From Sphyrna mokarran (Eukaryota), in the NCBI GenBank assembly GCA_024679065.1, contig JAGIQG010000019.1, positions 36,890,001-36,954,000 of the forward strand: DNA of 64,000 nucleotides, written 5' to 3'. The notes beneath the pieces are model-generated. The model did not search any database. It had not been told where the DNA came from and worked only from the letters and a program-made list of their open reading frames with translations. Each line of letters starts with the position of its first letter. The stretch's first letter is position 1. Shown piece by piece: positions 18,540 to 64,000 of the stretch. Both the position numbers and the translations under genes were made by a program.

Positions 18540-19485
18540 AGTCAGAGGCTGACCATTCTGTTCAATATATTGAAAGACTCTGTTATTTATTTGCCACTAA
18601 TGAAATTACATGGGAAGTTGAGAGAAAAGTCATTCTGCTTATGGTATGTGGACCTCAGACAAAAAAACTTATTAAAAATTTAATACCACCAGGAATCTAG
18701 ATAATAAATCTTTTGATCAACTCGTAAATTTATTATTATAACCCTAGAACATCAATCGTCATGCAGTATTTAAGTTTAACTCTGCTGTAAAGGATCCATT
18801 TATGTCAATTGCGTTATAAGTGGCAAGATGAAAAATTTAGCTGAACCATTTGAATTTGGACTTAGCTCCGGAAAATAGCTCCGGCAAGTGCAGAGAAAGT
18901 TGCAGTGCGTGTATAAAGGCAAGGCGAACGAGCAATGACACAAAACTTTTTTGGCAAGTTGGGAAGACATAGTTTAGAGTACAGAAGAGATAGAGCAGAA
19001 ACTCAATGTGCAAGGCAGGGAACAGAAGAAAAAGAAAACAGGTCAGCCAGACAGAAATTCTGATGAATGTTTTAGATGCAAGGAAGATCAACCCACAGAA
19101 GAATTTCCAGGATTCTATTTGTCTGTTTTGGCCACAATCAGAGAGCTCACATCTGAATCAAGCACCAAGTCAAACAGAATATACCTAGTTTAAACAAAAA
19201 ACTCCAGTGCACAATTTAAAATATGTTTGAGAAGAGGAATTTGAATTGAATAATGTAAAAATGAGTAAATCAGATCTGATAGTAATAATAACACTGGTAA
19301 GCAGGTGGCCACTATCCAATGCTTCTGTTATCATTGTAGGGCAGCAGGCATTTAAGTACCTTTGAGGCAGTGTTCAACCCCTAAAGTTAAATAATCTAAT
19401 AGAATTGGTTGAGGATTCAAGATGATTTGTAATGATTATCACCCACAAGGGTTTATTTCAGTATACCAGGTTACTTTTGGGTGAC
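18540..19485 (+). mobile_element. Degenerate Gypsy LTR retrotransposon internal fragments (gag, RT)
   Basis: YLFATNEI..RKVILLMVCGPQTKKLIKNL (gag-like, ~18580-18690); ITHKGLFQYTRLLFG-like RT motif at ~19438-19482. Confidence 0.65.
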
Positions 19486-19738
19486 CTAAGTCCTTAATTG
19501 AGTTATGTTTCATTTATGCTCAAGTCATTTTGTTACAAATGATAAACACAAATCACACACATTTATTTACGTAGTTCCTTTTCTCTCATTAGTCTTTGTT
19601 CTTTCAGTTTGTAACTAACTTCATGTTATAATATTAAGCAAATATCAGAAAATGATACGAAATATATTGTTATATATCTTGCAGTTCACTGCTTACAAAA
19701 TATTTTGCTACAATACATTATTCTAATATTTTATATAG

Positions 19739-19812
19739 AAAGAAAAGGAACTCAAGAACAAAAACGAACTCAAGCTAATCATGGAAGATTGTACCATAGG
19801 CAAGATGACACG
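19739..19812 (+). CDS. Gene 1 exon 5: cytoplasmic (ERKGTQEQKRTQANHGRLYHRQDDT)
   Basis: Acceptor ttttatatag|, donor acg|gtaacc; open in phase 1 and exits in phase 0, bridging exon 4 to exon 6. Confidence 0.7.
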
Positions 19813-21106
19813 GTAACCTTAATTTGTAGAATATGAATATGTAAATGGAGACCTAGCATCTGTTATGGGTTCAAAGCAGGTGACAAGCCTGACCCTATTC
19901 AGGATTATTCTGCAGCCATCAGTAAAATGTATTAAATCAAAGCTCTTCATATCCAATTAGGTGTATGAAGCAGACTGGCCTGGTCTGAGAGGATATGGGC
20001 AGGCAGACTTTTGATGAGTTCAAATTTATGAAGAGTGGAAGATGGGACTCTGGACAGAATACCATAGGAATAATCAAATTTAAAGAAGAGATGGGGTGTA
20101 GAGATATTATCATTGGACCAATAATTCAGACAACCAGAGGAGTGTTCTGGAGACCAAGGTTCGATTCCTACCATGATTGATGGTAAAATTTGAATTCAAT
20201 AAAAATCTGGAATTAAAATCCAATAATGACCATGAAACTATTGTTGATTGTCGTAAAAACCCATAATAATGCCCTTTAAGGAAGTAAATTTGTCGTTCTT
20301 ACCTGGTCTGGCTTACATGTGATTCTGGCCCAACAATTAGGGGTGGAAATACATGCTGGCACAGCCAACGACATGCACATCTCATGATTGAACTTAATAA
20401 AGGTTTCAGCAGGTGGCCAGAAAGAACTGACACCAGGGGTTTGCCAGTGGGAGCTGACGCTGAAAGAATAGAAGATGCTCTTGGATTCATTTTCTACTGA
20501 CAATTAGTAGTTTCACTGGAAAAATCTGAAGAATAAACCATTCAATAATAGAAAATGATGGAATAATGTGAGTGGAAAAATAATAAAATTATATTCATAT
20601 CAGTTTCAGAACATTTCTCTTTGCAATGACTGAGGAATTGAGAGCTGAAGCTATGATAGAAGTCCAAACACAGATTGTTTTGATTGATTGCCGTAAAATG
20701 TTTAATATATGCCATCAACTCACTCAAATTGGTATGTGAAACCATTGTCAAAACAAAAAAATGAATAAATTAGTATTACTCTGCTCTCTGCTCTTTGCTT
20801 ATCTCAGTTGAAGAGCAAATGTGTTGTTTATCTGTTGAAAATTTCTGGTGAAGGGCATAAGAACAGCAAATGTGTAAAGAACAAGTCAGCAAAAATGAGA
20901 TAAAACAAGTGCCAAATTTATAATTTGAAATATGTAGGTTGTACAAGTGAATGGGCTGAGGAAGATAAGTGTAGGAAAAGCAAATATATTTGTATGTTTT
21001 TCCCATTTTAATAGTAACTTTGCAGATTTTCATAGTAACTTCATTGCAATGTTAATGTAAGCCTACTTGTGACACTCAAATAAATTTAAACTTAAAATTT
21101 TTGCAG

Positions 21107-21229
21107 GATGAGAACAATGGAAATAATATCTACTATGCAGAACTGGAATTAGGAAACTTGCAGAAACTAAGAAGAAAGGAAGAGGAGGTTGTCTACAGCA
21201 CAGTGTTTTTTTCAAAATCTGGTGAATAG
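21107..21229 (+). CDS. Gene 1 exon 6: terminal exon with two ITIMs (DENNGNNIYYAELELGNLQKLRRKEEEVVYSTVFFSKSGE*)
   Basis: Acceptor tttttgcag|, phase 0; IYYAEL (21128-21145) and VVYSTV (21188-21205) fit [IVLS]xYxx[LV]; stop TAG 21227-21229. Confidence 0.87.
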   Translation, partial: DENNGNNIYYAELELGNLQKLRRKEEEVVYSTVFFSKSGE

Positions 21230-39019: not shown

Positions 39020-41060
39020 ATATAATATTCTAGAAGGTGAGATGACAATATCCATTAAAGATAACATGCAGTGCTAAAGAGAAAGGGTGCCTTTGACAGG
39101 AATCAATCCAATTGACTTGAGCTAAGAAACAAAAAAAGATGCTATTATATTGTTCAGTGCATACTATAGGTACCTACCAGTGAGAAAGGTGTAGATTAAC
39201 ACATTTGCAAAAAAATTATTGAAAGGTGCAAGAATAATAGAGTACAAGGATAATGGGATACTTTAATTTCCACATATAGACTTGGTTAGTAGGTTAGAGA
39301 TCAGAACAAAAAAGAATTCCTAGAATGTAGTCAGAAAAACTTTCCACAGCAATCCATTTTCAGTCTAACAAGAAAAAAGGCACTTCTAGGTCTGATTCTT
39401 GGAAATGGATCAAGTGTCAATAATTGAATCTTGTTGAATAGTGATCACGATATCATAAAGTTTAGGTTGGCTATGAAAAAGAACAAGGTACATAGAACAT
39501 AGAACATAGAACAATACAGCACAGAACAGGCCCTTCGGCCTTCGATGTTGTGCCGACCAAAATAAAAAGCAATGCCCCTCCTAACTAAACCATTCCCTTC
39601 TCATCCATATACTTATCAACTAACCTCTTAAACGCCACCAAACTTGGCGCATCTACAACAGCTGCAGGCAGGGCATTCCACTCCCTAATCACTCTTTGAG
39701 TAAAGAACCTACCTCTGATATCCGTCCTATAACTCATACCCCTTAATTTAAAGCTGTGTCCCCTCGTGCTAGCTTTCTCCATCCTAGGAAAAAGGCTATC
39801 ACTGTCCACCCTATCTAAACCTCTAATCATCTTATATGCTTCAATAAGATCCCCTCTTAGCCGCCTCCTTTCTAACGAAAACAACCTCAAATCCTTCAAC
39901 CTCTCTTCATAGGACCTGCCCTCCATACCAGGCAACATCCTGGTAAACCTCCTCTGTACCCTCTCCAATGCCTCCACATCTTTCTTATAATGTGGCGACC
40001 AGAACTGCACACAATACTCCAAGTGCGGCCGCACTAGAGTTTTGTACAGTTGCAACATGATGCTGCGGCTCCTAAATTCAATCCCCCTACCAATAAAAGC
40101 TAAGACTCCATATGCCTTCTTAACAACTTTATCCACTTGACTGCCTACTTTCAGGGATCTATTGACACATACACCAAGATCCTTCTGTTCCTCAACACTA
40201 TTAAGAGCCCTACCATTAGCCCTATACTCTACACATTTATTGTTCCTGCCAAAGTGCATTACCTCACACTTTTCCACATTAAACTCCATTTGCCACCTCT
40301 CGGCCCAGCTCTGCAACTTGTCCAAGTCACTCTGTAAACTAAAACACCCCTCTTCACTATCTACCACACCACCAACTTTAGTATCATCTGCAAATTTACT
40401 GATCCATCCCTCAATACCCTCATCCAGATCATTTATAAAAATTACAAACAGCAGGGGCCCCAAAACAGACCCCTGAGGCACACCACTCGTCACCGAACTC
40501 CACGATGAATATCTCCCATCAACCACCACCCTCTGTCTTCTATCTGCCAGCCAATTCCTAATCCAATTAGCTAAATCACCCTCTATTCCACACATCTGCA
40601 TTTTCTGTAGAAGTCTTCCATGGGCCACCTTATCAAAAGCCTTACTAAAGTCCATATATACTACATCAACCGCCTTACCCCCATCCACCTCTCTGGTCAC
40701 TTTCTCAAAAAACTCAATGAGGTTAGTAAGGCATGACCTACCCTTCACGAAACCATGCTGACTATCCCCAATCAATTCATTTCTCTCTAAATAACTATAA
40801 ATCCTATCCCTAATAATTCTCTCCAATACCTTGCCCACCACAGAAGTAAGACTCACTGGCCTATAATTCCCAGGAAGGTCTCTCTTCCCCTTCTTAAACA
40901 AAGGGACCACATTCGCCATCCTCCAGTCCTCCGGAACCACACCCGTAACCAACGAGGACCTGAAGATCAGAGCCAGAGGTACAATCCAGAATAAAAATAA
41001 TTAACTAGGGAAAGCCCACCTCAATGGGGTGAGAATGGATATGATTCAGATTAATTAGAA
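39020..41060 (+). mobile_element. Old CR1 endonuclease-region fragment, split by the younger CR1 below
   Basis: DHDIIKFRLAMKKNKVQ|SRIKIIN*GKA continues across the insertion. Confidence 0.7.
39493..40976 (-). mobile_element. Young 5'-truncated CR1 LINE with an uninterrupted RT ORF
   Basis: 455-aa ORF 39585-40952 (NYRPVSLTS, QHGF, DFSKAFDKV, GVPQGSVLGP, FADD); (catagaa)n tail; 7-bp TSD aggtaca at 39486-39492 and 40977-40983. Confidence 0.97.
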
Positions 41061-47076: not shown

Positions 47077-47137
47077 ATGGCGAATCCACTGTGCATCATG
47101 CTGTTGTCACTTCTCTTCCTCCAGCAGTTTCTTTTCG
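47077..47137 (+). CDS. Gene 2 leader exon: MANPLCIMLLSLLFLQQFLF
   Basis: Strong acceptor ttttttatttttcag| (exon starts 47074), Kozak gccATGg, hydrophobic core, donor g|gtaagg in phase 1 matching the V exon. Confidence 0.75.
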
Positions 47138-47278
47138 GTAAGGTCCCCCTCCTCTGCAAGGACATTCTCCTGGTACATCTCTTCCTCCTGGATGTCTCCC
47201 CGTTGCTGTGCCAGGTTGTAGAGTGCACACTAGACCATGATGATGTGAGAGAGTCTCTGGGGACAGTATTGGAGAGTT

Positions 47279-48018
47279 CAGTAAGAAGTCTGACAACATC
47301 AGGTTTAAATCCAACCGATTTATTTGATAGTAAACTCACAAGCTTTCAACCCTCTGGTCTTCGTCAGGTAAATGAGGTATTCTGGTCTCAAACAGCACAC
47401 ATGACAGCACAGACTGTTTATAGATTACTGATTAGAATGAGAATTTTTACACCTAACCTGCTATTCAAGTCTTAAAGTGGCTAACGATGTGAGTGGAAAA
47501 AGCACTGAACACAGGTTAAAGAGATGTGTATTGTCTCCAGACAGCACAGTAAGTGAGGTTTTTTGCTAATTCAGGCAAGTCATGGGGGTTACAGATAGTG
47601 TGACATAAAGCCAAGATTCCTGTTAAGACCGTCCTCATCTGTGGGAACTTGGCTTTATGTCACACTATCTGTAACCCCCATAACTTGCCTGAATTAGCAA
47701 AAACCTCACTTACTGTGCTGTCTGGAGACAATGCACATCTCTTTAACCTGTGTTCAGTGCTCCTTCCGCTCACATCGTTAGCCACTTTAAGACTTGAATA
47801 GCAGGTTAGGTGTAAAGATTCGCATTCTAATCAGTAATCTGTAAACAGTCTGTGCTGTTATGTATGCTGTTTGAGACCAGAACACCTCATCCACCTGACA
47901 AAGACCAGAGGGTCGAAAGCTTGTGAGTTTACTATCAAATAAATCGGTTGGATTTAAACCTGGTGTTGTCAGTCTTCTTACTGTGTTTACCCCAGTCCAA
48001 CACCGGCATCTCTACATC
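47279..48018. mobile_element. Penelope-like foldback element (~337-bp inverted arms, ~32-nt spacer)
   Basis: Arms 47279-47615 and 47648-47983; terminal ccccagtccaacaccggcatctctacatc; TSD ttggagagttcag at 47269-47281 and 48019-48031. Confidence 0.9.
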
Positions 48019-50106
48019 TTGGAGAGTTCAGGCAGCAAAATCACAGCTTCAGAAGCTCGACACTCAAAGGTGGACCAGCATGGGCCTCATTATCATGGAT
48101 CTCTGCCTCAGTCTCAGGCCTCCACTCTGGGTGTTATCAGCCAGGACCACAGTGGGAGTCTTAATCCTCCACAAGCCATCCCAGCAGCCTGAGGTGATCC
48201 TCAAAGACCCCAGGGATATCTGAGCTGTACAAGATGTAGCAATTGTGCACACTGCCTGGATGGCATGCACACATGTGCATGACATCACAAACTGTCTGAC
48301 CATTCAGAGAGTGGAACCCCTTTCTGTTAATAAAGGGCACTCCCTGATTCCATGGGGCCTGTAAGGCGAGGTGCATGCCATCCGTAGCCTCCACTACATA
48401 GGGTATCCTAGTGATGGCAGAAAAGCCTGCAGCCGAGGCTTCCTGTTGGGCCTGGCACATGTCAAAGTGGATTTAGTGGGCTGCCTGGCGTACAAGGCAT
48501 CTGTGTCAATGCCTGCGAGGTATTGCAGACGTCTCTGCTTGAGCCCTGGAAAGATCCATGCGCGTAAATGTTTACGGCCATCGTTATCTTCATGGCTATC
48601 AGGAGCAGGTGTCTTCTTGCCGCATGAAATGCTAGGTCTGCAAGGACGTGACATGGGTACTTCACAGTTTTCCTGCTGAGACATAGTCTGCAGTGGCACA
48701 TGGTGTCCAGCAGCTAATTGAAGACCGTTTGTTCTATAGAGGTAGAGTCTCTGTCTTCATAATCCCCTGCATGCCCTCATCCTCCTCCTTCCCCACCATC
48801 TCAAGTCCACAGGTTTCCAGATCCTGGTCTCTATCAGTGGCCCCTGACATTGTGCTGCAGCCTGAAGACTGGGTTGGCCTTGTTCATTACAGCAGCAACA
48901 AGTACGATTTCCAAAATAGTTGGGGGGGGGGGGGGGGGGGGAGGTATATGTGTGCTAGGGACATGTTAAGGAGAGAAAGAGAAGGATAATCCATAAGGTG
49001 ATCCATCCTGGGCCCGTCAATCTCTCCCAGTAACTTATATCCCATAACTCTGGACTCTGCCAACAAGACACCATCTCCAGTGCCATGTCCCAGCATGATT
49101 GGTTGCTGACTGTTGCCACGTCATTGTCATGGCAACCATCGACACTGCCCATGTCCCCTTGTGATCACCAATGGCCCGCCACACAGCTATATCCTTACTT
49201 CACATGATCATTCTGCATCCATACTGCAATTACATAGTCACTGGTGTGCATCATGAGCCTGTCCCTCCAGATAGCCAGTCCCCCAGGTATATGTTCCCGA
49301 GACCACAGACCATTGTCTGCAGCATGTGACAGGCAATTGCCAGCAGCATGTACAGCATTCACATAAAGTTTAAGGGTGGCTATGAGGTGTTCCCCATTGG
49401 AAACCCTTGAAGCGTAGACTTGCGTGCACCCACCTCGACACTGGCGCACTATCTTCTGGGAATGGCTTGCATTGTAGACAGATGGAGGAGAAGCACCCTC
49501 GTGACTATCATGTGATGGAAAATCTTGCAGTCTAAGATGCAGTGTGAACACTGCTAACTCCCTTGATTGGAGCAACAGCTGCCAGACCTGGTACTTGATG
49601 CTGTTAGTGGGGCTTGGAATGGAATGTCCACAATCAGCCACAGAGCCTGTTAGTAGGGTTAGCACTCAATCTCATATGAAATCCTTGAGGGACATTCAGC
49701 ATCCAGGGGAAATGTGTGAAACACAAGTCCTAAGTCAGAGGCCACCCTCCCCTCCCAACCTGTGACCCTCTGAACATGTCTGAGCCCCTCAATGCCCTGT
49801 ACCTATGCAAGCCCTTCACGCATCCCACACCATGGCAGCAACTGACCCTCACCCTGCACTGCAAGGGTTCGTGCTCAGCAGTATTCACTCCCTCAATCTC
49901 GTTCACTACTGTTGCTCCTTGACTACACTTTTAAAGACGTGTACTAATTGGGGGCAGTATGACATCATACCGGAGAAGTGGGAAACCTCTAGGAGTGTGT
50001 GCTGAACTTGCAAATTATATGGAAATCCAGTCAATTTAATGCTAAGCTGGTGCCTCCATGTTTCTCATTAAGATTATGTTTTTTTTACATCCTATATTTT
50101 TATTAG

Positions 50107-50454
50107 GTGAGGGATCTTTCTCTCGGGTTAATGGAGTCTCAGGTAAAGACATATTGCTGCCCTGCACTTTTCCTGTTGCAGTCAACTTCAGTCTGAAGGA
50201 TCTTGTCATTACCTGGCAGCAAACACTCAGTCTAATCGTGGTTCACAGCTTCTACAGTGTGAAAAATCATCCAGAATATCAAGACTCAGCGTTCAGGGGA
50301 CGGACTGAGCTGTTTCCCCAAGAATTCCACATTGGGAATGCTGCCCTGAGACTGAAAGGAGCAACTATGTCAGACCAGGGCAACTACACATGCTTCGTAA
50401 TTCAACAGGATGGGAAAGGCTACTTTGAGAGTGTGGTGGAACTGGAATTATATG
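50107..50454 (+). CDS. Gene 2: B7-family IgV domain (CD276/HHLA2/VTCN1-like)
   Basis: Acceptor ttttttattag|, donor g|gtgagc. Encodes GKDILLPCTF..LVITWQ..VVHSFY..YQDSAFRGRTELF..GNAALRL..DQGNYTCFV, the characteristic B7/butyrophilin V signature. Confidence 0.93.
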
Positions 50455-51009
50455 GTGAGCACTTAGATATCTCCCAGTAGTAAATGAAAGAACTTTGAAA
50501 ATGTTATTGAGTGAATTGTGTTTGGGTAAAGACTCATGATTGTCTGGAAAGTGTTGCACAGTTTTGATATATTTAGAATTGACTGTTCTTGAGGGAGATT
50601 CATAAGAATGGAGCCTGTTAGGTATGTAGGACAAATTAAGCAACCTTTGTACTTTGCAGAGGATGAATTTCTCTTCAGTCTGAGTAAAACATCCATTTAT
50701 CAATTATTCTCTCCACTTGAACCACTTGACTCAGGCTGTTATTGTATTTGAATTGAGGTACATTCCACTAAACTTGACTTGAAACTGCCCATCGTTATTA
50801 ACCACACTCTGAAAGGTCCCCAGGCATAAACCTGACATTTAACAACTAATGGCAGCCCAGATCTATTGGTCTGAGAGGCATATAGTAGACCATCAAATCC
50901 AAAATCATTTGGCTGCTTTCCACACCAGTCTGAAAGACCTCCGCCTCTGATCATGGGTGTGAGGGATGGTGGTGAGGGGTCAGTGAAAAGAGATTTGCTC
51001 TGTTGACCT

Positions 51010-51600
51010 GGGGGTGCAGGTGCACAAGTCTCTGAAGGTGGCAGAGCAAGTGGAGAAGGTTGTGAAGAAAGCATATGGTATGCTAGCCTTTATAGGAAGG
51101 GGTATAGAGTACAAGAGCTGGCCTTTAATGTTGCAGTTGTATAAAACAATGGTTAGTCCTCATTTGGAATACTGCGTCCAGTTCTGGTCACCTTACTACT
51201 GGAAGGACGTGGAGACTCTGGATGCTGCCTGGTATGGAAGGTCTGAATTATGAGGAGAGGTTAGGCAAATTGGTACTGTTTTCCTTAGAAAGACATAGAC
51301 TTAGAGGAGATCTAATAAAGGTGTACAAGATTATGAGGGGTATAGATAGAGTAAACAGGGTTAAGCTTTTTCCTAGGATGGACTCGAATAGCATGATGGC
51401 TCACGGGCTTAGGGTGAGGGGAGTAAGTTATAATCTGGATGCTAGAGGGAGTTTTTTCACACAGAGGGTGGTGGGGATATGGAATGCGCTGCCAAGTAAA
51501 GTGGTGGAAGCAGGCATTCTGGAGTTATTTAAGAAATACTTAGATGGGCACATGAACAGAATGGGGATGGAGGGGTATAGAAAACTGATTTAAAATAGGG
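51010..51600 (+). mobile_element. CR1 LINE 3' fragment
   Basis: KKAYGMLAFIGRGIEYKS..HLEYCVQFWSP; FFTQRVVGIWNALP. Confidence 0.9.
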
Positions 51601-51625
51601 ATCATGAGCCTTGGGAGTCCCTGGG

Positions 51626-52123
51626 AAGTGTGTAAATAGATGATGATATTGATGTGCTTGTTTTTATCCTACAGGTGCTTTGGTCCACCTTGTTGTCTAA
51701 CAAGGGGCATACACGCGATGGGTCGTGAGAGGGCTGCTCTTGGATTTTTTTCGAGAGTATCCTAGTGCTTCACGTCGTTAGTGTACGCTTGACCTGGACC
51801 ATTTGATGGGCAACACGACAGCTCAATGACTATCGCTGTGCTGTGCAGATACATGGATTTGGGCCTGTGTCTGTGGGAGTTTGCGCATTCTCCCCGTGCT
51901 TGCGTGGGTTTTCTCCGGGTGCTCCGGTTTCCTCCCACATCCCAAAGATGTGCTCTTAGGCTAATTGGCAAAACAAATTCTCCCTAAATTGGCTCAAATT
52001 TGGTTTTTAATCCATAGATCTGTAAACATAGACAAGGATCACGGGTAGAGGTGGGAACATTGGAGTGGCGGCGCGGCCTCATTGGGCCAAAGGGCCTGAA
52101 TCACATGCTGTTTTGTTCTTTGT
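51626..52123 (+). mobile_element. SINE-related composite repeat (partner of 7920-8389)
   Basis: Near-identical reverse complement of 7920-8389. Confidence 0.85.
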
Positions 52124-54235
52124 TCTATCCAGTCTGTCACTCTCCAATCAGAGAAAAGGTGCAAGGTGTGAGGCACATTTCTTTTAGGTATCCCTACAAA
52201 GAGGATGCCCACCTGATTATGTTAGAAAATGAGATGGGATTGCTGGTTATTTGCCCACCCATCTCATCAACGTGTCCTGAGGTGCAGGAACCACCCCACC
52301 CCCGCATTTTAGGTGACGGAAATCCTGACAATCCCGAGCAGTATAATAGTGGGTAAAGACCCAGCATTGCCTACTTCTTATCCACTTTATCCCCATTCTT
52401 TCATCTGGTAACCAAGTTTAAAAGAGGCAAGTCAGATCCTGTACTTACCTGCTAACTCTCTGACATTTTATCCTCCTGTTGGTTGCTCAGTGAATCTTCG
52501 AGCTGATGACCAGATGTTGGTCAATACTTTCCTAATAATTAAGTTCCCATCCCATTTCCTATAATGTTTTCCTCCATTCTCACTGGCCATCATATCCTTT
52601 CCAAGGGAGAGCAACAAAAGTGATTCTCGATGTCAGAAATCTATAAGGAAATATTATGGATACCACATTAGATATGGAGAGTTTAAGCTGTCTGTTATAA
52701 TTTGAAGTCTTGTGATAACAGGCATGTAAAATTATTTAAATAGAATAAAAGAATAGCATTATTTAAAGCTTTGAAATATTGCAGACGAATAATTCCAGTA
52801 AACATGACTTGAAACTGCCCATGATTATTAACCAGACTCTTTAGATTTGACTTTTTGTTAAAACACGGCAGACAGGCACACAGGTCTACAGCAATGCCAG
52901 GATGAAAGAATGAAATGTTAATTGCTGAATGGAGTGCAGGGAAATGTGGGAAGAAGTTTCTTTAACAATAAATATCTGAAGAGAAAGATGGGCCATAATT
53001 TGCTTGCAGTGGCATTTGGCATCAAATTGCCACTCCATACCCATTTACCTGCACTAAATTCCTTCAGTGCCGGTCTCATCTAACCTTCCTTACTCAGGCC
53101 GGATGAGATTCAGGTAGTGCAGCAGATCATCAGATTCAGAGTTCACAGCAAAGGAGACACATCCTTTTTTTAACAGTAAAGTAGTTTAAAGGTCCCATTG
53201 TAAATAACAAACCAGGGAGAAAGTAAATGTGTAAGGTAAACTGATGGGATTTGAGCTGTGAGTAATTAACCAAGAAGTTGCAATCCACAAAGTATTGAAA
53301 CAACAATACCATGACAAGTATAAGCATATTATTATCCAGAGTGTAACAGCGCTAAATGATATGCAAGCTGAATAATCATGGCTGAGTTAATTTTTACTGA
53401 TCATTAAGTACTTATCATATTGCTGCTTATTGAAGCATGCTATGGACTACCACATTCCCTACATTAAAGTGTGCCAACACATCACAAACATCTCATTGGT
53501 TGTAGAGTGCTTTGGGATGTCCTGTGGCCATGAAAAATGCTACTTAAATACAAGTATTTTATTTATCTATTCTATCTTATTGATCCCATGACTATTTGGA
53601 ACTGAACTGGATATCATGTAATTTGCATCGATCTCCAGATGTCCTTTTCCAAGACTGACCGAAGGAACACTTCGTAAAATAGAGCCAGGTGATATCACTA
53701 TGCTTATTCCCAGGAAATGAATACAGATCAACATTGATGATCAGATTAATTTAATTGACAATTAGTAATTATCCATTGTTTTCAAACCGTCTTAATGTGA
53801 TGAAAACTTGCCTTGGCAATCTAGTTTTAAAATCATCACTTCCAAATTGTCTTTCCCAATAATTATTATCTGCCGTCTTTACCTGATGTGGTTTATATAT
53901 ATTACACCAGATGCCCAGTGTGTGGCTGATTCTTAAATGACCTCTAAAATGGATTAGTAAACCACTTAGCTGTATGCAAGAAGACTCACACCACCTGAAT
54001 GTATAGCAGGAGGAGTCATTCAGCTCACTGAAATTGTGCTAGCTCTGCATGGCACAATATAGTCACCCCATTCATCTGCTCTACCTCCATAAATTTATTT
54101 CCTTGAAATGCCAATATGCTTGTTCCCACATTCTCTCTTTCCCAAAAACATCCATCTATGTAGCCCCAGCCCATAAACCATCAATTAATAGCAATGATTT
54201 CTCCATTTGTCTACTTTATTTAAACATGTCTTGTG

Positions 54236-54545
54236 GGTGGCACACTGGCACAGTGGTTAGCACTGCTGCCTGACAGTGCCAGAGTCCCAGGTTCATTCTA
54301 GTCTCAGGTCACTGTGTGGAGTTTGCACATTCTTCCCAGGTCTGCACAGGTTTCCTCTGGATGCTGTGGTTTCCTCCCACAGTTCAAAGATGTGCAGGTT
54401 GGGCAGATTGGCCATGCTAAATTGACCCTAGTGTAATGGGGGTCAGCAGGGTAAACGTCTGAATTTGTGGGAATGGGCCTTGGGTAGGATTGTGGTCAGT
54501 GCAGACTTGAGGGGCCGAAAGGCCTCTTCTATATTATAGGGGTTC
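54236..54545 (+). mobile_element. HE1-like SINE
   Basis: ggcacagtggttagcactgctgcc head; ggagtttgcacattct core. Confidence 0.82.
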
Positions 54546-56634
54546 AATGTCATAATTTTGTACATATCTATCTTAACTTCCCTAGTCTCCTTTTCTTGTT
54601 TACAGGATTATTGATCGGTTACAGTACTGGAGGCCATTCAGTCTGTTTTGTCTGTGTTGGATCTCTGAAAGAGCAACTCACCTAATATCATTCCTCTGCC
54701 TTCTCCCTATAGCCTTGCAAATTATTCCTCTTCAGATAATAATCCAATTCTTTTTTGAAAGCTGCCACACTCAAAGGCAGTTCATTGCATTAAAAAAAGT
54801 TCTCATGTCACTGTTGCTTCTTTTGCCAATTGCTTTAAATCTATTTGGTCTAGTTCTCACTTCTTCCACCAAAGGGAACAGTTTCACCCCATCAATGTTA
54901 ATGAAGTTCTTTATTCCTGACTGCATCCTTATGAATCTTTTCTGCATGCTCATGTCCTTCACATATTTCCTGAAAGGTTCCCAGACTGAATATTGAGGCT
55001 GAACCAGTGTTTTAAACAGTTTAATTAGACCTGTTGTCCCTTTGTACTCAATGCTCCTATTTGTAAAACCCAGGATGCTGTAATGGTTTATTAACAATAT
55101 CCCCCTCCCATTTCACAATATGTCCAGTTCTGTATCATTTACAAATTTTGAAATTGGGCCCTCTATACTCAAGTCTGTGTCATTAATGTACAACAAGAAA
55201 AACAGGATCCTAACAGTGATCCCTGGAGAACCCCATCACAAACTTTCCTCCAGTTCAAATAACAACCAGTGTTTCTGTTCACCAGCAAATTTTATATTTT
55301 CAAGAGCAGTTAGGGATGAGCAAGAAATGCTGTTCTTGCCAAAGAAACCCATTGTGTTTATCAATGAATAAAAAGATCTTAGATAACTGCCATTGGTTTC
55401 AATAAGCAGGTATTATCATAATCCCTCAAGATACAATATTCAATTTTTACCCTAATATCATTGCCTAATATTATTATCATCAATAGATCTTAAACTGGTA
55501 TTTTGTACTTCTTAATGATCCTGTATCTCAATTCTAACCAATAGTCATTGGAGAACTTAGAGCTGTCATTTTAGTCAAAAGGTAAAAACAGGAGCTCAGT
55601 ATGCGCTGCGTTAATAAGACACAACTTTGAAATTTGGATTAACACACATTTTTGCTCCTAATTGCTGAGCACCATAATTTTGCTTACATGGAGATGCTAA
55701 CTCAGTTTCCTGCAAGTTTGACAGTGAAGTGCTGAGTACATACATTTTTGGTGGAGTAGTTTTTGAGGGCTGCTTGCACCACTTCTACAGAATGCGTGGA
55801 GTATTCTGGTTGTCACCGCACAACATACCACAAGCAGGTTCAGAATCTGAAGAAGAGGATGCACAACTTTTCACAAAGCATTTAAGATGCTCGTGGAGGA
55901 GGTTTAGAACAGGAGAAATGTTCTGTATCCACAGAGAAAAAACATCACCTTTCCCTTCTATCCCTCTACTCATACAGCAGCTGCTCAGATATAGTCTGTG
56001 TCCTTCTCCTAATCCTTGTCCAGAACAAAGGAGAATCTCGAACCAGATTATCATGACAAAATACTCCCTTTCTGCTACTGACCCTTAGGAAGTCTATTAG
56101 CAAAGAACATTTTTTTGGGACAAACCCTCAGAGACTATTTGGATTAAATATTGCTAAGAGTGTTGGTGAAGAATGAACAGTGTCCAAGGAACTCTTGCCA
56201 CATGTTTCAGAGACTCTCTTCACAACTGCAGTGGCATATAAACCAGAAATGATGAGTATCCCTTTAATTAGCACTTCAAATCCACATCAACACCTTGTTT
56301 ACCCTAAATAACTAGTTCTGTTACGAAAGGCCACTGAGATGCCATGCAGCTTCCTTGATAAATTCTGCAGGCAGGTAGAATATAATTTGAAGTAGTGAAC
56401 TTTCAGGTTCCTTATCCTTACTTCAGTTCCTTTAAAAAGGTGACATTTTGCTCTAAACACCAGCAGATTTGGTATTTCAGCTCAAAACTCCACTCTGGTC
56501 ACATCAGGAGATCGTTAGTGCCGAGATGCACTGCTAAACATAGTTAATTTCACAGGAAGATTAAGTGATTATTTCATCTCAGTTCTTAATAGAATCATTT
56601 AACCATAATGTCCTGCTTATTCCATCTATCCTAG

Positions 56635-56793
56635 ATGAACCTCTGATTCCTGGAATTGATGACAAAAATCCAGCTTTGGAAAGAAAAAAATTAGCATTAC
56701 CACTGGGGCTCTCAACTGGAACTCTGATTATTTTTATTGCAGTCGGATTTGGAATTCATAAAAAGCAAAACAAGAAGCAACAAAATCCTGAGA
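56635..56793 (+). CDS. Gene 2: stalk + transmembrane + juxtamembrane exon
   Basis: Acceptor tctatcctag|, donor a|gtgagt, phase 1-1; DEPLIPGIDDKNPALERKK-LALPLGLSTGTLIIFIAVGFGI-HKKQNKKQQNPE. Confidence 0.85.
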
Positions 56794-56999
56794 GTGAGTA
56801 AAATGTTTAGAAATTTTAGGCATTCACTGATTGATTTGCATACATATAAATACAAATCTGTTACAAATCTATTACAAAATTACAGAACAAATTTCTTGAA
56901 TATCTAAAGTAATGGGTTCTTTATATGGAAATGAATTTACTGCTTTTAATCTCACTTCCAAATTGGTTATATTTAAAACCGATGATGATGTGTATTACT

Positions 57000-58015
57000 T
57001 TGATTTGATTTATTATTGTCAATATATATTAACATACAGTGAAAAGTAATGTTTTCTGAGCGCTATACAAATAAAGCATACCATTCATAGAGAAGTAAAG
57101 AATAGAGTGCAGAATGTAGTGTTACAGCCATAGCTAAGGTGTAGAGAAAGATCGACTTAATTCAAGATAGGTCCATTCAAAGGTCTGATGGCAGCAGGAA
57201 AGAAGCTGTTTTTGAGTCGGTTGGTACACATCCTGAGATTTTTACATCTTTTTCCTGACTGAAGAAGGTGGAAGAGAGTATGACCAGGGTTCATGAGGTC
57301 TTTAATTATGTTGGTTGCTTTTTCAAGGCAGTGGGAAGTGTAGACAGAATCAATGGGTGGGATGCTGGTTTGAGTGATGGATTGGGTTACATTCACAACC
57401 TTTCATAGTTTCTTGTGGTCTTGGACAGAGCAGGAGCCATACCAAGCTGCGGTACAATCAGAAAGAATACATTCTATGGTGCATCTGTAAAAGATAGTAA
57501 GAGTCATGGCGGACATGCCAGATTTCTTTAGTCTTCTGAGAAAGTAGAGACAAGGCTTTGGTGGTCTTTCTTAACTATAATGTTGGCATGGGGGCATAAG
57601 GACAGGTTGTTGATGCTCTGGGCACCTAAAAAGTTGAAGCTGTTGACCATTTCTACTTCATCCCCATTGATGTTGACAGGGCTATTTTCTCCTTTACGCT
57701 TTCTGAAGTCGATGACAATCTCCTTCATTTTGTTGACATTGGAGGAGACATTATTGTTGCTGCATCAATTCACCAAATTCTGAATCTCTTTACTGTACTC
57801 CATCTCGTCATTGTTTGAGATCTGACCCACAACAATGGTGTCATCAGCAAACTTGAAAATTGAGTTGGAGGAGAATTTGGCCACATAGTCATAGGTGTAT
57901 AGTAAGGGGTTGAGGACACAGCCATGTAGGGCATTGGTGTTGAGGATGATCGTGAAGGAGGTGTTGTTGCCTATCCTTACTGATTGCAATCTGTGAGTTG
58001 GGAAGTTCAGGATCC
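57000..58015 (-). mobile_element. Rex1/Babar LINE 3' part
   Basis: HGCVLNPLLY..FKFADDTIVVG; KEIVIDFRK; RLKNSFFPAAIR. Confidence 0.88.
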
Positions 58016-59359
58016 AATCACTGGATCTACTGTAGACTGACAGATTTATTGATATAAATGATTATTGGTGCAAAATGTGTGACATAATTGAGTTCTATAG
58101 ATGTATGCTGTAAAAACATTCTGAAAGATGTGCTGGTTAGGTGTATTGACCCAAGCAAGTGCCGGACTGTGGCGGCTAGGGGAATTTTACAGAACTCCAT
58201 TGCAATATTAATGTTAAAGCCTTACTTATGACTAATAAATAAATAATAATAAATTGTATGATGTGATTGTTAACTTATACTAAAGATAAAAATAGTGAAG
58301 TCTTGCTAAAGCTAAAAAAGGCACTAGTTAGACACTCCTAACATACTGTGAACAGTTTTAATCCCCTTATCTGAGGAAAGATACAATGGCATTGGAGGCA
58401 TTAAGAAATTGTGAGGTTAGATTTTCAAATTTTCATTTCAAGCATTGAATTCTCAGCATTAGGACAGCAAATTTTTAAAATCTTCTCCAAGTGTTAAGTC
58501 AAAAGTCAAGGATTAACTCTGTTGAAGATTGACAATCTCTTCTCCAGGGAAGTTTCACTGTGGGTTCAAGTTAGCTCTGAACACCAGAGCTGCAATACAC
58601 CTTAATATCAGTGAAAAATGAGCTACTTGACACTGATACTCAATTTGTATGTAAATAGAGCCTGAAACTGAACTCAGAGTCACTAAGCAAAGAACTGTTA
58701 CACAATAAGGATCACAGAAACAGATTCCTTGTATTCTCAATTATTGACTGTGACTTGTGGAAATTCTTTGTTGTAATTTACTTTAATCCAATATTCTGTC
58801 AGGATTATATTTTAGAAATGGTGACTTGAATTTTGAATCCCCAATAGAGTTGAGCACTGAAGCAGATGGGTATGACCACAGCCAATAAGCCGGTTTCCCA
58901 GCACCATTCTACCACCCAGCAGTTACTCAGCAGGTCAGCATTCCAGGCAGGCTTAGAGACCTTCCCTGTCTAACTTGCTTCAGCAAGACAGCACAGGTTG
59001 TCCCTTAGTGGTTCCATGTCACATCCTACAGCAATGACCTGGCTGCTATAGGTTCTTAATACTATAAACTGTAACACATGTCAAAAGCACATCCACTGTG
59101 GGACCCTTTCCTCTTCCATCTCTTCCCCTCCACCCTCCTTCCCTCAATCTACTCCTCACTGATCAGAAAGGTCAGATGGCTGCTTCCTGCATGTTTGAGG
59201 ATCTTGTATTGTCCCGTCAGCTTTGGCAGCATACCATGCATCTTTAATTGGATGGTGAGCCCATCGTCTGGCCTTTAAGTGGCCAGGGAAGATCATACCT
59301 ACTTGACTGTTTCTCAGATACTGCTGGCTGCTGACCTCTGACTGCTGGATCCCAAAGCC

Positions 59360-60480
59360 CTATGCTTAATGTGCATTTGGATTTTCAGAAGGCTTTCAAT
59401 AAGGTTCCATACTGGAGGTTAGTAAGCAAAATTAGAGCACATGGGTTTGAGCTATTATACTGGCATAGATTGAGAATTGGCTATTGCACAGAAAGCAGAG
59501 AATAGAATAAACAAGTCATTCTCAGGTTGGCAGATTGTGACTAATGAGTCACCATAAGGATCAGTGTCTTCTGGCCCCTGCTATTTACAAACTGTATTAA
59601 TGATTTGGATGCAGAGACCAAATACAATATTTCCAAGTTTGCTGATGACTCAAAACTAGATAGGAATACAAGTTGTGAGGAGGATTGAAGGAGATTTAGA
59701 CCAGCTAAGTGGATGGGAAAGAACGTGGCAAATGAAATATAATTTGAAAAAAATGTTAAATTACCCACTTCCATATGGAAGATAGAAATGCAGAGTATTT
59801 CTTAAACAGTGAGAGATTGGGAAGTGTTGATGTCCAAAGGACCTGGGTGTCCTTGTTCATCAGTCACTGTAAGCTAACATGCCAGTATAGCAAGCAATTA
59901 GGAAAGCAAATGATATGATGGCCTTTGTTGTAAGAGGATTTGAATACAGAAGTAAATAAGAGTTGCTGTAATTCCCTTTGATGACACTGTACCTGATGCA
60001 TTGTATACAGTTTTAGTCTTGTTACCTTAGGTAGTATATGCTTGCTATAGAGATAGTACAATAAAGGTTCACCAGACTCATGCCTAGAATAGTGGGATTG
60101 TCTTGGTAGGGGAGATTGAGCAGGTATGTTCTCAAGAGTTTTGAAAAATGAGAGGTGGTATCATTGAAGCATACATGGCTCAATAGTGTAGTTGCAGGAA
60201 GAATGATTCCTCTTGGGTTCTAAAGCCAGGAGACACAATTTCAGAATGAGAGGTAGACCATTTAGGACTAAGAAGGAATTCCTCAGAGGGTGGTGAATTT
60301 TTGAAATTCTACACCTCAGTCAGCTGTGGTTATTTAGTCATTGAATATATTCAGGGCAGACGTAAACAGATTTCTCGATGTACAAGTATCAAGAGATACA
60401 GGAATAGTGCAGGAAAAAAAGCACTGAAATAGAAGATCAGCATGATCTAGTTGAATGGAGCAAGCTTGAGGAGCTGAATG
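59360..60480 (+). mobile_element. Degenerate CR1 LINE 3' part
   Basis: DFQKAFNKVP and SKFADDSK-like motifs with stops. Confidence 0.8.
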
Positions 60481-60557
60481 ATTCCTATGATACCAGCAGT
60501 AAATAAAACCATCTATTAAGAGGCAGAAACTAACTCAAGCTTATTTTGTTTTTTCAG

Positions 60558-60587
60558 AAATGCCTTTACTGATAGACGCCGTGGAAG
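60558..60587 (+). CDS. Gene 2: 30-nt cytoplasmic micro-exon (KMPLLIDAVE)
   Basis: Strong acceptor ttattttgttttttcag|, donor gaag|gtaatg, phase 1-1, frame-preserving. Confidence 0.65.
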
Positions 60588-61464
60588 GTAATGTTCTGTT
60601 TTGTGTTCGTCTTAGATTCTAGAATTTACAATGCTACTGCAACTGCCCACGATAACAAAATTCGTTTTGAATCCAATTTTCCAAAAAGAATCTCACTCAC
60701 TGCTGAATGAACAATGGTGACATGTTTGATTTTGTAATTTAGCCAGGCAAAAATAGAATTCTTACCATTAAGTAACTTGAACTTGGACTCCATATATTAA
60801 AGGAGATTAAAAACTATAGACATACGTCAGTTTTAAGCTATGTATATTGAGAACACATTAATAAAATGGACTTACCAAGTTTACTCCTTTCAGAACACAT
60901 GAACAGTCTAATAGATAATTGCAGTTCAATTTTCTCCCAAAAGCATCTGTCAACATTCATGGACAAATAGGAAGAGAGGTTTCCTTTAAGACATTGATAA
61001 TGTCATCTGGATGTCCTACCCCACACCGTACATTGATGAGAAATCTGACTTAGTTTTCATGCTTCTTTAGTTCTTCCAAATAATTCTTTGGAATGCTCTT
61101 CTACAACCTAGTCTCTTGGAGAGTAACCACATTCCATTGAACTCTGCTCTGAGTATTTCAGCTTTGATCACTTAATCCTGCAGCATTTTATACATCTATA
61201 AATTAGACATAAATTAGGATTCAACTACAGGTTCAAATCAGATAATCTTTTCTCACATGTTCCATTTGACAGTCTGGTTATGAAATTGAGATTGTCCTTT
61301 TGTGTTGAATAACAAGGTCATGTGATCTTTTGAACGTAGGACTTAGAAGCAGGATTAGGCCATGTGATCTTTTCAGCCCGCTCCACCATTCAATAAGATC
61401 CTAGCTGGTTTTGTGTTTAAATTTTTTTTCTTTCCTGTCTGGCCATCATGACCCTTGACTCATT

Positions 61465-61591
61465 GGGTGGAATTTTCCTGTCCTGTCCACCACAGGAATT
61501 GTGGCAAGCGGGACACAGACCATGCAAAGATCCGTTGACCTTGGGCAGGATTTTCCAGCCTTGGGATAAGCGCAGCCGTAAAATCCCACCC
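61465..61591. mobile_element. MITE (127 bp)
   Basis: TIR gggtggaatttt / aaaatcccaccc, 11/12 match. Confidence 0.55.
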
Positions 61592-63739
61592 TATATCTAT
61601 CAAATCTCTAACTCTCCCTTCAATAAATCCAGTGACCAGGACTTCACTGCTTTCTGGGAAAAAATTTCTACGTACTTAAGACCATCAGAAAAACATTTTT
61701 TCCTCATCTGTCTTGAAGGAAAGGCCCCTCGTTCTTAAACTGGGGTTCTCATTCCAGCCTCCACCACATTTTCCCAATCCAGTTTCCTTAGAGTCTTGTA
61801 TGTTTCAGTAATATTACCTCTCATTTTTCTAAATTGCAGTGGGTGTGGGCCAAATCTATACAATAAGTCCTTCATTGTAGGAAAAAGTTGAATGAATCTT
61901 CTCTAAACTGTTTCAAAAACAATAAGATGAGATTCTCCTGAATCGGAACACCAAAGTGTTTCTCATTAGCACATCTTGGAATTCTCCCATCTGATGAATG
62001 CAAATATGTGCATCCAGAGCAACCCACCAGCCAAACAGGCTTCTCAAAGGGGCGGCACTCCTCCCCCACCAAAATGGAAATAGTGACACCCCCCCCCTCC
62101 TCTCAAATTGACCAGGGGTGCATCATCACTGCCTCAGCAAAGACAAGCATCCACCCACAAATAATGTATAGCCTTCCCCCTCATTCAGGCCATGCACCTT
62201 GGCAGTGTCAGTGGTGTATTGCCCCATGGCACTAACATACTGACCTGGAACTTAGGGCCCCAGGGGGGATTAGGGAGATAGGTCCAGTAGTCATGTGCCC
62301 CTCTGCCACTGCCAGACTACAGAAAGATGGTTCCCCAAGGCTCCTGGAGTTGAGTGGATTTGAACTGGGGGCAAAAAGTTGATCTCAACACTTTCTCCCA
62401 ATTTGGGGGTGTCATGGCGGGTCTGCCCCTAATGGCTGACTTGAAGATAACCGTTGCATAGTGATTTCTGACAACTCTGTGATTAACATTTTCATTCCTG
62501 TCAGTTATAAAATTTCGAAATGGCCTAGTCACTTTAACTTCCTTGCCCCCTGGACAGTTGGTAGACTTCTAAATTATTGCAGCACCATTCTGCAGCAGGT
62601 ACTCCCTTTCTGTCAGAAGCGGTAGGTGTGAATGAGTCCTTTGAAGTCCTATGGAAGAGAGGAGATGTCAGTTTCACCAAGGGGATGGGGGGGTGATGGC
62701 TGGGAAAACAGCAGGTGCCACTTTGAAATCGTTTCCTGAGACATTCTCACTGTCAAGTACATTTCCCAGGGATGGACTGAAAAATTCATGTTTGCAAACT
62801 GAATGGAACCGGGCAGTATGTTGTCTTCTGCTCGCAGCCTTTGGAAGCTACCAGTTCCTCAGGGAATGACCCCCTTCTATTCAACTAGTCATTGGAAACA
62901 GAGGCTCCATTACTGGAGGGGATCACTAGCAGCAATGGCCATAACCATGGACAAAATCCTGCCATGAGGGGTTATTCCTTTGCTTCAAGAAGCCTGCCTG
63001 TGATACCCTCTGAAATTTATATTTAAATTTATGCCTTTGAGAATACTTCCATTTTGAAATTCTTGGAGCTGCCAAGACTCTGGAGCTTTTGGCCCTCTGA
63101 CTGAGTTGGTAGATTGCTTTATTCATTTGAACAGTGAGCACAGAAATGGCCAAGTAGGAGGCCACCTTTGGGAAAAGAGCTCACTGGTCAGACTTTAAGA
63201 AATGCAAGCTTAGAACACACAATTGGTCTGGATGTTGGGGGTCAAAATTCTTTCCCTTGAATTTAGTGATCCATTATCCATACTTGATAAGAGACTGGAA
63301 ATGTTTTTCATCTCATGCTGAGATCATTTTAATTTATTTTTCTCAGGATATTTATATTCCATCCATTTGCCCATGTCCCTAAGCTCGAGGGTGAATCCAG
63401 ATACTAAATGGAAGACAGTTCCACAGTTTGTCCTGAAACACGTACTTAGAAGAATCCAAATTCTAAACAGATAATACGGATTGGAAATGAGGGATTCTTT
63501 CGTCTCAGTTCCTGCCCTCATTTCACCATCAAAATTCTGCCCCATTTATCAAATACTGAGAATGAACTAGTAAATATTATAACATTTTAGAATCTAAAAG
63601 GAAATATGCATTTATTAAAAGCTGGCTATGTAACTAATTGAATATCTGCTGCCTCTTTTGGAATTTCATTTCTCCCATGTTTTGTTCATCCATTGTAACT
63701 AACACAAACTCGTTGAGAAATTCAACCATTCCCTTTCAG

Positions 63740-64000
63740 ATGCCATTCAAAGTTTCAAGGAATACACTTTGAGAAACACAGATTGCTTCGACAAGATGTC
63801 ACATGGGACACTCAAAAACTATAGCTCACTTGCCAGAACTGTGAAAGTCATCTCTCCAAAGCAGCAAGACATATTGGACAATATTGTGGGGGCAGGTGCT
63901 TCAGATATTGAGAAAGAAGTGAAAGCTGCGCATCTCCTGTCATTGCCCCAGGAAGGAAACTGCTCTTCAAAGCGAGTCCTGCTAGTAGGTGATGCAGGAG
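63740..64000 (+). CDS. Gene 2 (probable): start of an exon encoding a pre-NACHT region and a partial Walker A of a NACHT/P-loop NTPase; truncated by the window end
   Basis: Acceptor ccctttcag|, phase 1, open to the window end: DAIQSFKEYTLRNTDCFDKMSHGTLKNYSSLARTVKVISPKQQDILDNIVGAGASDIEKEVKAAHLLSLPQEGNCSSKRVLLVGDAG. Absent from the ORF track because it has no stop in the window. Confidence 0.72.

Follow-up and report, generated by a model that had tools for sequence, protein, structure and literature searches.

The window analysed here is a stretch of 64,000 nucleotides (nt) from Sphyrna mokarran, and all coordinates refer to this whole stretch. With a probability of about 0.88, which covers architecture, expression and family together, positions 47077-64000 of the window are the 5' part of one expressed gene, encoding a membrane-anchored protein in which a B7-type immunoglobulin variable (IgV) domain and a transmembrane (TM) helix are joined to the NACHT NTPase of an NLR. 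This architecture is here called B7-NLR. From its N-terminus, the protein consists of a signal peptide, an IgV domain similar to those of B7-H3 and B7-H4, a short stalk, the TM helix, a stop-transfer sequence, a dileucine motif and a linker of about 75 residues. Orthologous proteins are predicted from their sequences to continue with a complete NACHT domain, a winged helix (WH), an HD2 domain, a short leucine-rich repeat (LRR) region of the ribonuclease-inhibitor (RI) type, and a helical tail of about 90 residues that belongs to no known family. B7-NLR is a real, conserved and expressed membrane-anchored protein, models of which are public and appear not to have been recognised as a family.

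The gene model consists of five exons, the last of which is cut by the end of the window (Table 1). The exons were translated and searched one by one, and analyses at full length were made with public orthologue proteins, not with the joined exons of the window. All exon joins are of phase 1, each of the five exons is open in the frame required by its joins, and the GT-AG signals are intact according to a scripted check of the borders; the window contains no N. Borders, frames and signals are as described in an earlier reading of the DNA from its letters (the sequence-only reading), which had proposed five plus-strand exons joined in phase 1 without stops. Exon 1 encodes MANPLCIMLLSLLFLQQFLF, which has the character of a signal peptide, and its last base opens a Gly codon that is completed in exon 2. 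Exon 2 is on its own recognised as Pfam V-set (E = 4.8e-11), and its translation contains the Cys pair, a WQ motif, a DxGxYxC motif and the sequons NFS and NYT. The hydrophobic stretch of exon 3, LGLSTGTLIIFIAVGFGI, corresponds to a single TM helix and is followed by the basic stop-transfer sequence HKKQNKKQQ. When exon 3 is read past 56793 without splicing, its frame meets a stop after two codons, at 56799-56801. The translation of exon 5 ends with KRVLLVGDAG at the window edge, again as had been claimed; the start of a Walker A motif, VLLVGDAG, is visible here, and the window ends before GK[ST]. Compared alone with Pfam, exon 5 has no usable match (best E 0.2), and the NACHT class is therefore not settled from the window. 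Between 50454 and 56635 no exon for an immunoglobulin constant (IgC) domain is seen by eye among open reading frames (ORFs) of at least 50 amino acids, which are only retroelement-like; these ORFs were not searched, and a short or split exon could escape such an inspection.

Table 1. Exons of the B7-NLR gene in the window, and their matches on the orthologue P0003 from Mustelus asterias
Exon	Position	Length (nt)	Strand	Encoded part	Acceptor	Donor	Residues of P0003	Identity to P0003
1	47077-47137	61	+	ATG and signal peptide		gtaagg	1-20	95%
2	50107-50454	348	+	IgV	tattag	gtgagc	22-136	91.3%
3	56635-56793	159	+	stalk, TM and stop-transfer	cctag	gtgagt	138-189	88.5%
4	60558-60587	30	+	mini-exon	ttttcag	gtaatg	191-199	8/9 identical
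5	63740-64000	261 seen, ends with window	+	pre-NACHT linker, first NACHT strand, start of Walker A	ctttcag		201-286	89.5%

When exon 5 is used as a phmmer query against 1.84 billion cluster representatives, a single match is obtained. This is P0001 (XP_038668161.1), a protein of 993 amino acids from Scyliorhinus canicula with the automatic name NOD1-like, which is matched with 67% identity over residues 233-319. Pfam recognises V-set at residues 24-131 and NACHT at residues 311-472 of P0001, together with NOD2_WH, NLRC4_HD2 and LRR. With P0001 itself as the query, 85 proteins are obtained from 8000 scored candidates, and 18 of these 85 have both V-set and NACHT in precomputed Pfam annotation. 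The nearest orthologue of the gene in the window is P0003 (XP_078091874.1, 969 amino acids, automatic name NLRP5-like). The single-residue gaps that separate the exon matches on P0003 fall exactly at the split codons, and from this it follows that the P0003 model uses the same five joins. After the stretch that corresponds to exon 5, P0003 continues with VLLVGDAGVGKSW, in which the Walker A motif is completed (VGKSW), into a Pfam NACHT domain (E = 2.1e-23) and then into NOD2_WH, NLRC4_HD2 and LRR. No identical protein from the species of the window is found among the search matches. In P0001, a 33-residue insert beginning with G-N follows the mini-exon at residues ~199-232. With the donor of exon 4 (gtaat) read through, the window gives G-N at this place as well. 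The insert yields a spurious second hydrophobic segment, and the automatic model has probably picked the wrong donor here.

Splicing in the same organism can be followed in a public sequencing run, here called X1, which is RNA by guess and whose assembled Logan contigs were compared with positions 58001-64000 at a likeness setting of 90%. The contigs contain a joint from 60585 to 63738 with an ambiguity of two letters, i.e., 60587/63740, where the skipped part has the form GT..AG and the depth is 66.9. They also contain a contig with 160 letters ahead of 60558, the last 30 of which are exactly 56764-56793, the end of exon 3, a sequence that is unique within the window. In this way both junctions for which the sequence-only reading had suggested that spliced reads be sought, 56793/60558 and 60587/63740, are present in X1. 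A contig of 1752 nt and depth 99.1 places its letters 1-263 on 63738-64000 and extends at least 1489 nt beyond the window end; therefore, the RNA continues past the window over a stretch comparable in length to a vertebrate NACHT exon. An unspliced contig that starts at 60558 and runs into the intron has a depth of 5.78, and contigs identical to the intron have depths of 3-6 in most intron bins, a depth pattern that fits RNA with some pre-mRNA. Since the exons are colinear on P0003 and two of the four junctions occur in X1 contigs, the gene model is beyond chance. The X1 junctions, taken together with the joins of P0003, bear out the central proposal of the earlier reading, which was that a single gene unites, by splicing, a signal peptide, a B7-type IgV domain and a TM segment with an intracellular NACHT NTPase.

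The same comparison gives joints at 59529/60063, 59644/59818, 59649/59840 and 59649/59889, which were rejected as splicing events: they have no GT..AG, their sides are short (21-28), they lie in intron 3, and they are treated as repeat-derived contigs. The depth of X1 is 1334 at 58001-58200 and 80 at 61401-61600, compared with 3-6 in the adjoining intron, and these two places are probably expressed or high-copy repeats. Repeats are also seen elsewhere in and around the gene. In intron 1, at ~47290-47990, two long reverse-complement arms are visible by eye, with ~47300-47560 mirroring ~47620-47980, and the arrangement looks like a hairpin-forming transposon remnant directly after the signal-peptide exon. 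On the minus strand, at 39585-40952, an ORF of 455 amino acids reads like the reverse transcriptase of a long interspersed nuclear element (LINE), as judged from its translation and not from a domain search, and many shorter fragments related to it are scattered across the window and the introns of the gene.

Models with the combination of V-set, one TM segment, NACHT and LRR come from five amphibians and from cartilaginous fish, of which 17 species are named, and the combination is found in Logan contigs as well. When the 21 closest proteins are analysed with hmmscan (E <= 0.001), NACHT and NLRC4_HD2 are each recognised in 21/21, V-set in 19/21, LRR_6 in 17/21 and NOD2_WH in 11/21. V-set is missing from a coelacanth model that is truncated at its N-terminus and from the model of a Pristiophorus paralogue. 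At the same threshold, no CARD, PYD, BIR, death-fold or SPRY/PRY domain is found among the 21 relatives, their Pfam matches include none of the small-GTPase families (Roc, Rab, AIG1), and neither C1-set nor C2-set is among the 15 Pfam families reported for them. Further Ig-type matches (Ig_3, Ig_2) occur in two of the 21, including P0021 from Pleurodeles with a second IgV copy. In the orthologues, stalk and TM segment come directly after IgV. The alignment of the 21 proteins has invariant columns for the Walker A motif G-x4-GKS, the Walker B motif DGLD, the sensor-1 Thr and the WH His, while the Ser and Arg that follow the sensor-1 Thr, as well as the Cys pair, the Trp and the D-x-G-x-Y-x-C motif of IgV, are conserved to at least 90%.

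Other queries enlarge the family. The newt protein P0019 gives 37 proteins at E <= 1e-20, which add the frogs Ascaphus, Bombina and Hyperolius, more copies from Pleurodeles, truncated models from Lissotriton and Ambystoma, and a second coelacanth fragment. Residues 1-290 of P0003, used as a query, give 12 long proteins, and all 12 have NACHT. Cluster look-ups add Amblyraja radiata and Leucoraja erinacea. Full ORFs are also found on Logan contigs of 3.3-4.4 kb from skate-like and newt-like organisms, namely P0009 (982 amino acids) and P0018 with four cluster mates (995-1008 amino acids). The first five exons alone span 17 kb in the window, and from this it follows that contigs of 3.3-4.4 kb must be intronless; most simply, they are transcripts. 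The family has one or few copies per species in the models seen, the coelacanth is represented by truncated models only, and no member from teleosts, amniotes or Xenopus is found, an absence that is provisional, as the searches scored only the candidates sharing most words with the query. The automatic names given to members (NLRC3-like, NLRP5-like, NOD1-like) contradict each other.

The phylogeny of the family was estimated from the NACHT-to-HD2 core of 105 out of 109 proteins with a quick IQ-TREE run, in which SH-aLRT is the only measure of support; P0075, P0079, P0080 and P0084 were excluded because Walker A was not matched in them or because of their length. All 24 rows with V-set, TM and NLR fall, together with six truncated models, in one clade of 30 rows with a long stem and an SH-aLRT support of 100. 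Within this clade, coelacanth and amphibians make up one branch (support 99) and chimaera and elasmobranchs the other (support 100), which mirrors the species tree. Its sister consists of three models that have no TM segment and have CARD-like N-termini, from two frogs and a lizard. The NLRC3 group of reptiles and birds and the NLRP-like groups of fish are placed elsewhere in the tree, and the B7-NLR family is not nested in them. The program warned of long branches among the outgroups, and the result within the family is independent of these. B7-NLR is, accordingly, one orthologous family that is older than the split between cartilaginous and bony vertebrates and that has been kept in sharks, rays, chimaera, coelacanth and amphibians. 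Five batoid proteins, P0098-P0102 from Pristis, Mobula, Hemitrygon and Narcine, fall outside the B7-NLR family in a clade of their own (SH-aLRT 100), which is not its sister group.

The best solved relatives of the IgV domain are CD276/B7-H3, with E = 9.9e-30 for the four-Ig form, in which two stretches are matched, and 4.2e-14 for the two-Ig form; then follow VTCN1/B7-H4 (1.2e-18) and, after this, MOG, BTN3A, ICOSL and PD-L1. By sequence comparison, the IgV domain is classified as B7-type, nearest to B7-H3 and B7-H4. The best solved relatives of the NTPase part are NOD2 (5irl, 2.2e-26), NLRP3, NLRP6 and NLRP5, and residues 744-880 of P0003 match ribonuclease inhibitor and LRRC34, i.e., LRR proteins. 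Scanned for hydropathy, 19/21 relatives have a single TM-like segment between IgV and Walker A, the exceptions being a Stegostoma isoform in which the TM segment is skipped and the truncated coelacanth model. In most rows, Lys and Arg are more numerous after this segment than before it, and the N-x-S/T sequons of P0003, N98 and N113, lie within IgV (residues 22-136). These features suggest a type I topology, in which the IgV domain would be outside the cell or in the lumen of an endosome and the NACHT-LRR part would be in the cytosol.

Just inside the predicted membrane crossing, the Glu that ends exon 3 and the residues of exon 4 together spell E-K-M-P-L-L, an acidic dileucine motif of the form [DE]xxxL[LI]. 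Motifs of this class are bound by AP adaptor complexes and steer proteins into endocytosis or endolysosomal sorting. A motif of this form is present at the aligned juxtamembrane position in 23/30 models of the family; it is missing from seven, i.e., the isoform in which the TM segment is skipped, a paralogue that has F-L, and five models that are truncated or divergent. In the alignment of 21 rows, the acidic column is Glu or Asp in 19 and each of the two Leu columns is Leu in 19, the others including one Phe and one Ile. The Met of exon 4, encoded by the ATG at 60560, has a Met in the same column in only 3/20 aligned relatives, and this ATG is therefore not a conserved start codon.

The rate at which the different parts of the protein have changed can be judged from the identities between 13 chondrichthyan and two newt members. 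These are 41.8% for IgV, 39.2% for NACHT and 45.3% for LRR, compared with 12.1% for stalk plus TM, 14.2% for the pre-NACHT linker (about 75 residues), 22.1% for HD1-WH, 30.6% for HD2 and 31.8% for the C-terminal tail; the identity of the juxtamembrane segment lies within 12-22%. The IgV domain is in other words as conserved as the ATPase, which speaks for a conserved partner and against a surface that binds pathogens and diversifies fast. The helical tail after LRR is 50.9% identical among the 13 chondrichthyans. When the tails of P0003, P0019 and P0004 are compared with Pfam at E <= 10, only sub-threshold and mutually inconsistent matches are obtained, and no effector domain is recognised.

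The B7-NLR gene model must be weighed against three other accounts of the same DNA. One of these, which the sequence-only reading had itself raised as a caveat, is that a short-tailed B7-like gene ends at 56801 and that a separate NLR gene begins with the ATG at 60560. The stop that the unspliced frame meets two codons after 56793 and the existence of that ATG are what one would expect in such a case, contigs cannot exclude minor isoforms, and one unspliced contig does exist, albeit at low depth (5.78). However, in X1 exon 3 ends immediately ahead of 60558 and the joint 60587/63740 has a depth of 66.9, the Met column holds Met in 3/20 relatives, NACHT is present in 12/12 long proteins that share the N-terminal 290 residues, the whole fusion is found on intronless contigs of both skate-like and newt-like origin, and it has been kept across the distance from shark to amphibian; two adjoining genes are therefore highly improbable. 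A slightly larger, and still very small, probability is given to the case that the transcript is real and the copy in this shark is decaying or non-functional, be it a pseudogene or a read-through chimera from which no protein is made. The introns are full of LINE debris and the reading covers the gene up to 64000 only, but the five exons are open, their splice signals are intact, each exon, the one for the signal peptide included, is 88-95% identical to Mustelus, and the depth of X1 is 99 in exon compared with about 5 in introns, with a contig that runs on for 1489 nt, approximately the length of a NACHT exon. That the P-loop at the window end could belong to another class of NTPase (Roc, Rab-like or AIG1/GIMAP) was a second caveat of the sequence-only reading, which had only VLLVGDAG to go by, exon 5 alone having no match in Pfam. 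This caveat can practically be dismissed: P0003, at 89.5% identity over exon 5, continues into NACHT (2.1e-23), NOD2_WH and NLRC4_HD2, its solved relatives are NOD2, NLRP3, NLRP6 and NLRP5, and among the 21 relatives NACHT is found in every one and a small-GTPase family in none.

Several circumstances weigh against the account given here of one expressed gene for a type I B7-NLR protein. The RNA label of X1 is guessed, the contigs may have dropped minor isoforms or an alternative promoter that feeds exon 4, and a processed DNA copy is a conceivable source of the X1 joint. The junctions 47137/50107 and 50454/56635 lie outside the stretch 58001-64000 that was compared with X1, and they are taken from orthologue models. 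The window ends within Walker A, and GK[ST], Walker B and everything beyond are seen in orthologues only, the X1 contig contributing no more than its length past the window end. The relatives are mostly automatic gene models, the topology is derived from a hydropathy scan and sequence rules only, and no recognisable signalling domain is found. Finally, P0006, isoform X2 of Stegostoma tigrinum, skips the TM exon, so that IgV is joined straight to the mini-exon; were this isoform real, its NLR part, behind a signal peptide and with no anchor, would come to lie in the secretory lumen. P0006 may be a by-product of annotation or splicing.

B7-NLR shares features with several known protein families. 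Like B7-H3 (CD276) and B7-H4 (VTCN1), its closest solved IgV relatives, it is a type I protein with a signal peptide and one TM segment. A classical B7 protein, however, consists of IgV, IgC and a short tail, whereas in B7-NLR no IgC is seen and the tail is an NLR of about 780 residues. Accordingly, of the features by which B7 membership is defined, an IgV domain on a type I protein is present, and IgC and the short tail are missing. Butyrophilins resemble B7-NLR in that a B7-related ectodomain and a TM segment are joined to a large intracellular sensor domain, but this domain is B30.2/SPRY and the ectodomain includes IgC, in contrast to the NACHT-LRR of B7-NLR, in the 21 relatives of which SPRY/PRY is not found. 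With NOD2, NLRP3 and NLRC3, B7-NLR has in common, as judged from its orthologues because the window ends within Walker A, the core of NACHT, winged helix, HD2 and RI-type LRR, in which the two Walker motifs, sensor-1 and the His of the winged helix are conserved. Those proteins are soluble and carry an N-terminal CARD or PYD, whereas B7-NLR constitutes a clade of its own (SH-aLRT 100). The NLRC, NLRP and NAIP groups are defined by an N-terminal CARD, PYD or BIR on a soluble protein; the N-terminus of B7-NLR has a signal peptide, IgV and a TM segment in this place. The batoid proteins P0098-P0102 are, like B7-NLR, predicted type I Ig-TM-NLR proteins of cartilaginous fish. They have about 1300 amino acids with a signal peptide, V-set, C1-set, TM, CARD, NACHT and LRR, and unlike B7-NLR they possess IgC and CARD; their place in the tree suggests that they arose by another fusion or that they and B7-NLR separated very early.

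Outside these families, the nearest architectural counterparts have been reported from invertebrates. According to the parts of the reports available to us, AjNLRC4 and AjNLR-new of the sea cucumber are membrane proteins with Ig domains, TM segments and NACHT (PMC8699970, PMC13133943). For AjNLRC4, the Ig part is reported to be extracellular and NACHT intracellular, with no CARD, and the protein is reported to bind microbes and to drive actin-dependent phagocytosis (PMC8699970). As far as these descriptions go, AjNLRC4 is devoid of LRR, and its Ig-type domains, two in number and not B7-like, are accompanied by two TM segments, in contrast to the single TM segment, the single B7-type IgV and the NACHT-WH-HD2-LRR series of B7-NLR; the resemblance between the two, which were compared by description, is most likely convergent. 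TM segments have been predicted in NACHT proteins of sponges (PMC12909245), and membrane-bound NLRs have been predicted in sponges and cnidarians (PMC3879445, PMC5094078); as presented in the accessible text, these are invertebrate proteins, they are predicted only, and they have no B7-type ectodomain. Among vertebrates, the NLR-B30.2 proteins of teleosts (NLR-C) are an example of a lineage-restricted NLR that is fused to a domain from the B7/butyrophilin world (PMC4852459). From what is given there, their B30.2 is C-terminal, the proteins are cytosolic, and the group is hugely expanded, whereas B7-NLR has one or few copies per species. A survey of whale shark NLRs makes, in its accessible portion, no mention of Ig or TM (PMC8455134). 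No description of a vertebrate Ig-TM-NACHT protein is found in the open PMC and bioRxiv literature, a scope that does not cover subscription journals and supplements, e.g., the NLR tables of PMC8455134. The statement of the sequence-only reading that the architecture is unfamiliar among characterised vertebrate proteins fits this open literature, with the addition that uncharacterised and misnamed models exist in public databases.

What the protein might do can be considered from its predicted layout. The dileucine motif would route it into AP-adaptor-dependent endocytic or endolysosomal traffic. In the most likely mechanism, nucleotide-driven oligomerisation of NACHT would take place on the cytosolic face of the membrane, and the single TM helix would couple this oligomerisation mechanically to clustering of the B7-like ectodomain. 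Such a coupling can be imagined to run in either of two directions. In the outside-in direction, clustering of IgV induced by a ligand would nucleate a NACHT oligomer, which agrees with the usual logic of a receptor and, by analogy with what is reported for AjNLRC4, is a plausible scheme at somewhat less than even odds. In the inside-out direction, LRR-NACHT would be a cytosolic sensor and IgV the output, so that oligomers array the ectodomains as a multivalent ligand for a conserved lymphocyte receptor, and this we regard as a tentative possibility. It is favoured by the position of IgV at the N-terminus, which is the place of the effector domain in canonical NLRs, with LRR as the sensor; by the lack of CARD, PYD or any other effector in 21/21 relatives and of any effector in the C-terminal tail; by the conservation of IgV (41.8%) relative to NACHT (39.2%) between chondrichthyans and newts, which is easier to reconcile with a conserved partner in the host than with microbial ligands that change fast; and by the nature of the nearest solved IgV relatives B7-H3, B7-H4, BTN3A, ICOSL and PD-L1, which are lymphocyte-directed ligands. 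A precedent exists in BTN3A1, which reports intracellular phosphoantigen via its ectodomain. On the other hand, no counter-receptor is known, LRR is equally conserved and displays no sign of diversification, the conserved dileucine motif fits a receptor that internalises its ligand at least equally well, and AjNLRC4, the only Ig-TM-NACHT protein that has been studied, is reported to signal outside-in, to judge from the available part of that work (PMC8699970).

The inside-out scheme can be given a fuller form, in which the cytosolic LRR-NACHT part senses infection or damage and arrays the B7-H3/B7-H4-like ectodomain at the cell surface as a multivalent ligand for a lymphocyte receptor, an arrangement that would go back to the earliest jawed vertebrates, with later loss in teleosts and amniotes. 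Taken as a whole, this fuller proposal is rather unlikely. Other roles, e.g., that of a membrane-tethered regulator similar to NLRC3, are given a somewhat smaller chance than either direction of signalling.

A V-domain exon that lies 26 kb upstream of the B7-NLR gene and on the same strand, at 7150-7536 (within 5779-21229), deserves mention in its own right. It is open and has a J-like end, GKGTALQV, in the manner of a germline-joined VJ. A role as a CD28-type partner was considered and is not supported, as its best solved relatives are V domains of Ig light chains and TCR-alpha (E ~1e-14 to 1e-8) and not members of the CD28 family.

In the textbook view, NLRs of vertebrates are soluble sensors of the cytosol that carry CARD or PYD effectors, and B7 proteins are ligands with short tails. 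The B7-NLR gene unites the two designs in a single membrane protein of type I. Their union is no accident of gene prediction: it is spliced in this shark, is present on intronless contigs of skate-like and newt-like origin, and has been kept since before the split between cartilaginous and bony vertebrates. Contradictory automatic names hide a distinct family, and surveys of NLRs that are based on lists of domains could recover its members. The family is a testable candidate for coupling an extracellular or luminal Ig interaction to a STAND-type ATPase switch, in either direction, and it bears on the early linkage of innate sensors with B7/butyrophilin co-signalling as adaptive immunity arose. 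If the inside-out direction is the true one, cytosolic innate sensing would be wired to B7-type co-signalling within a single polypeptide.

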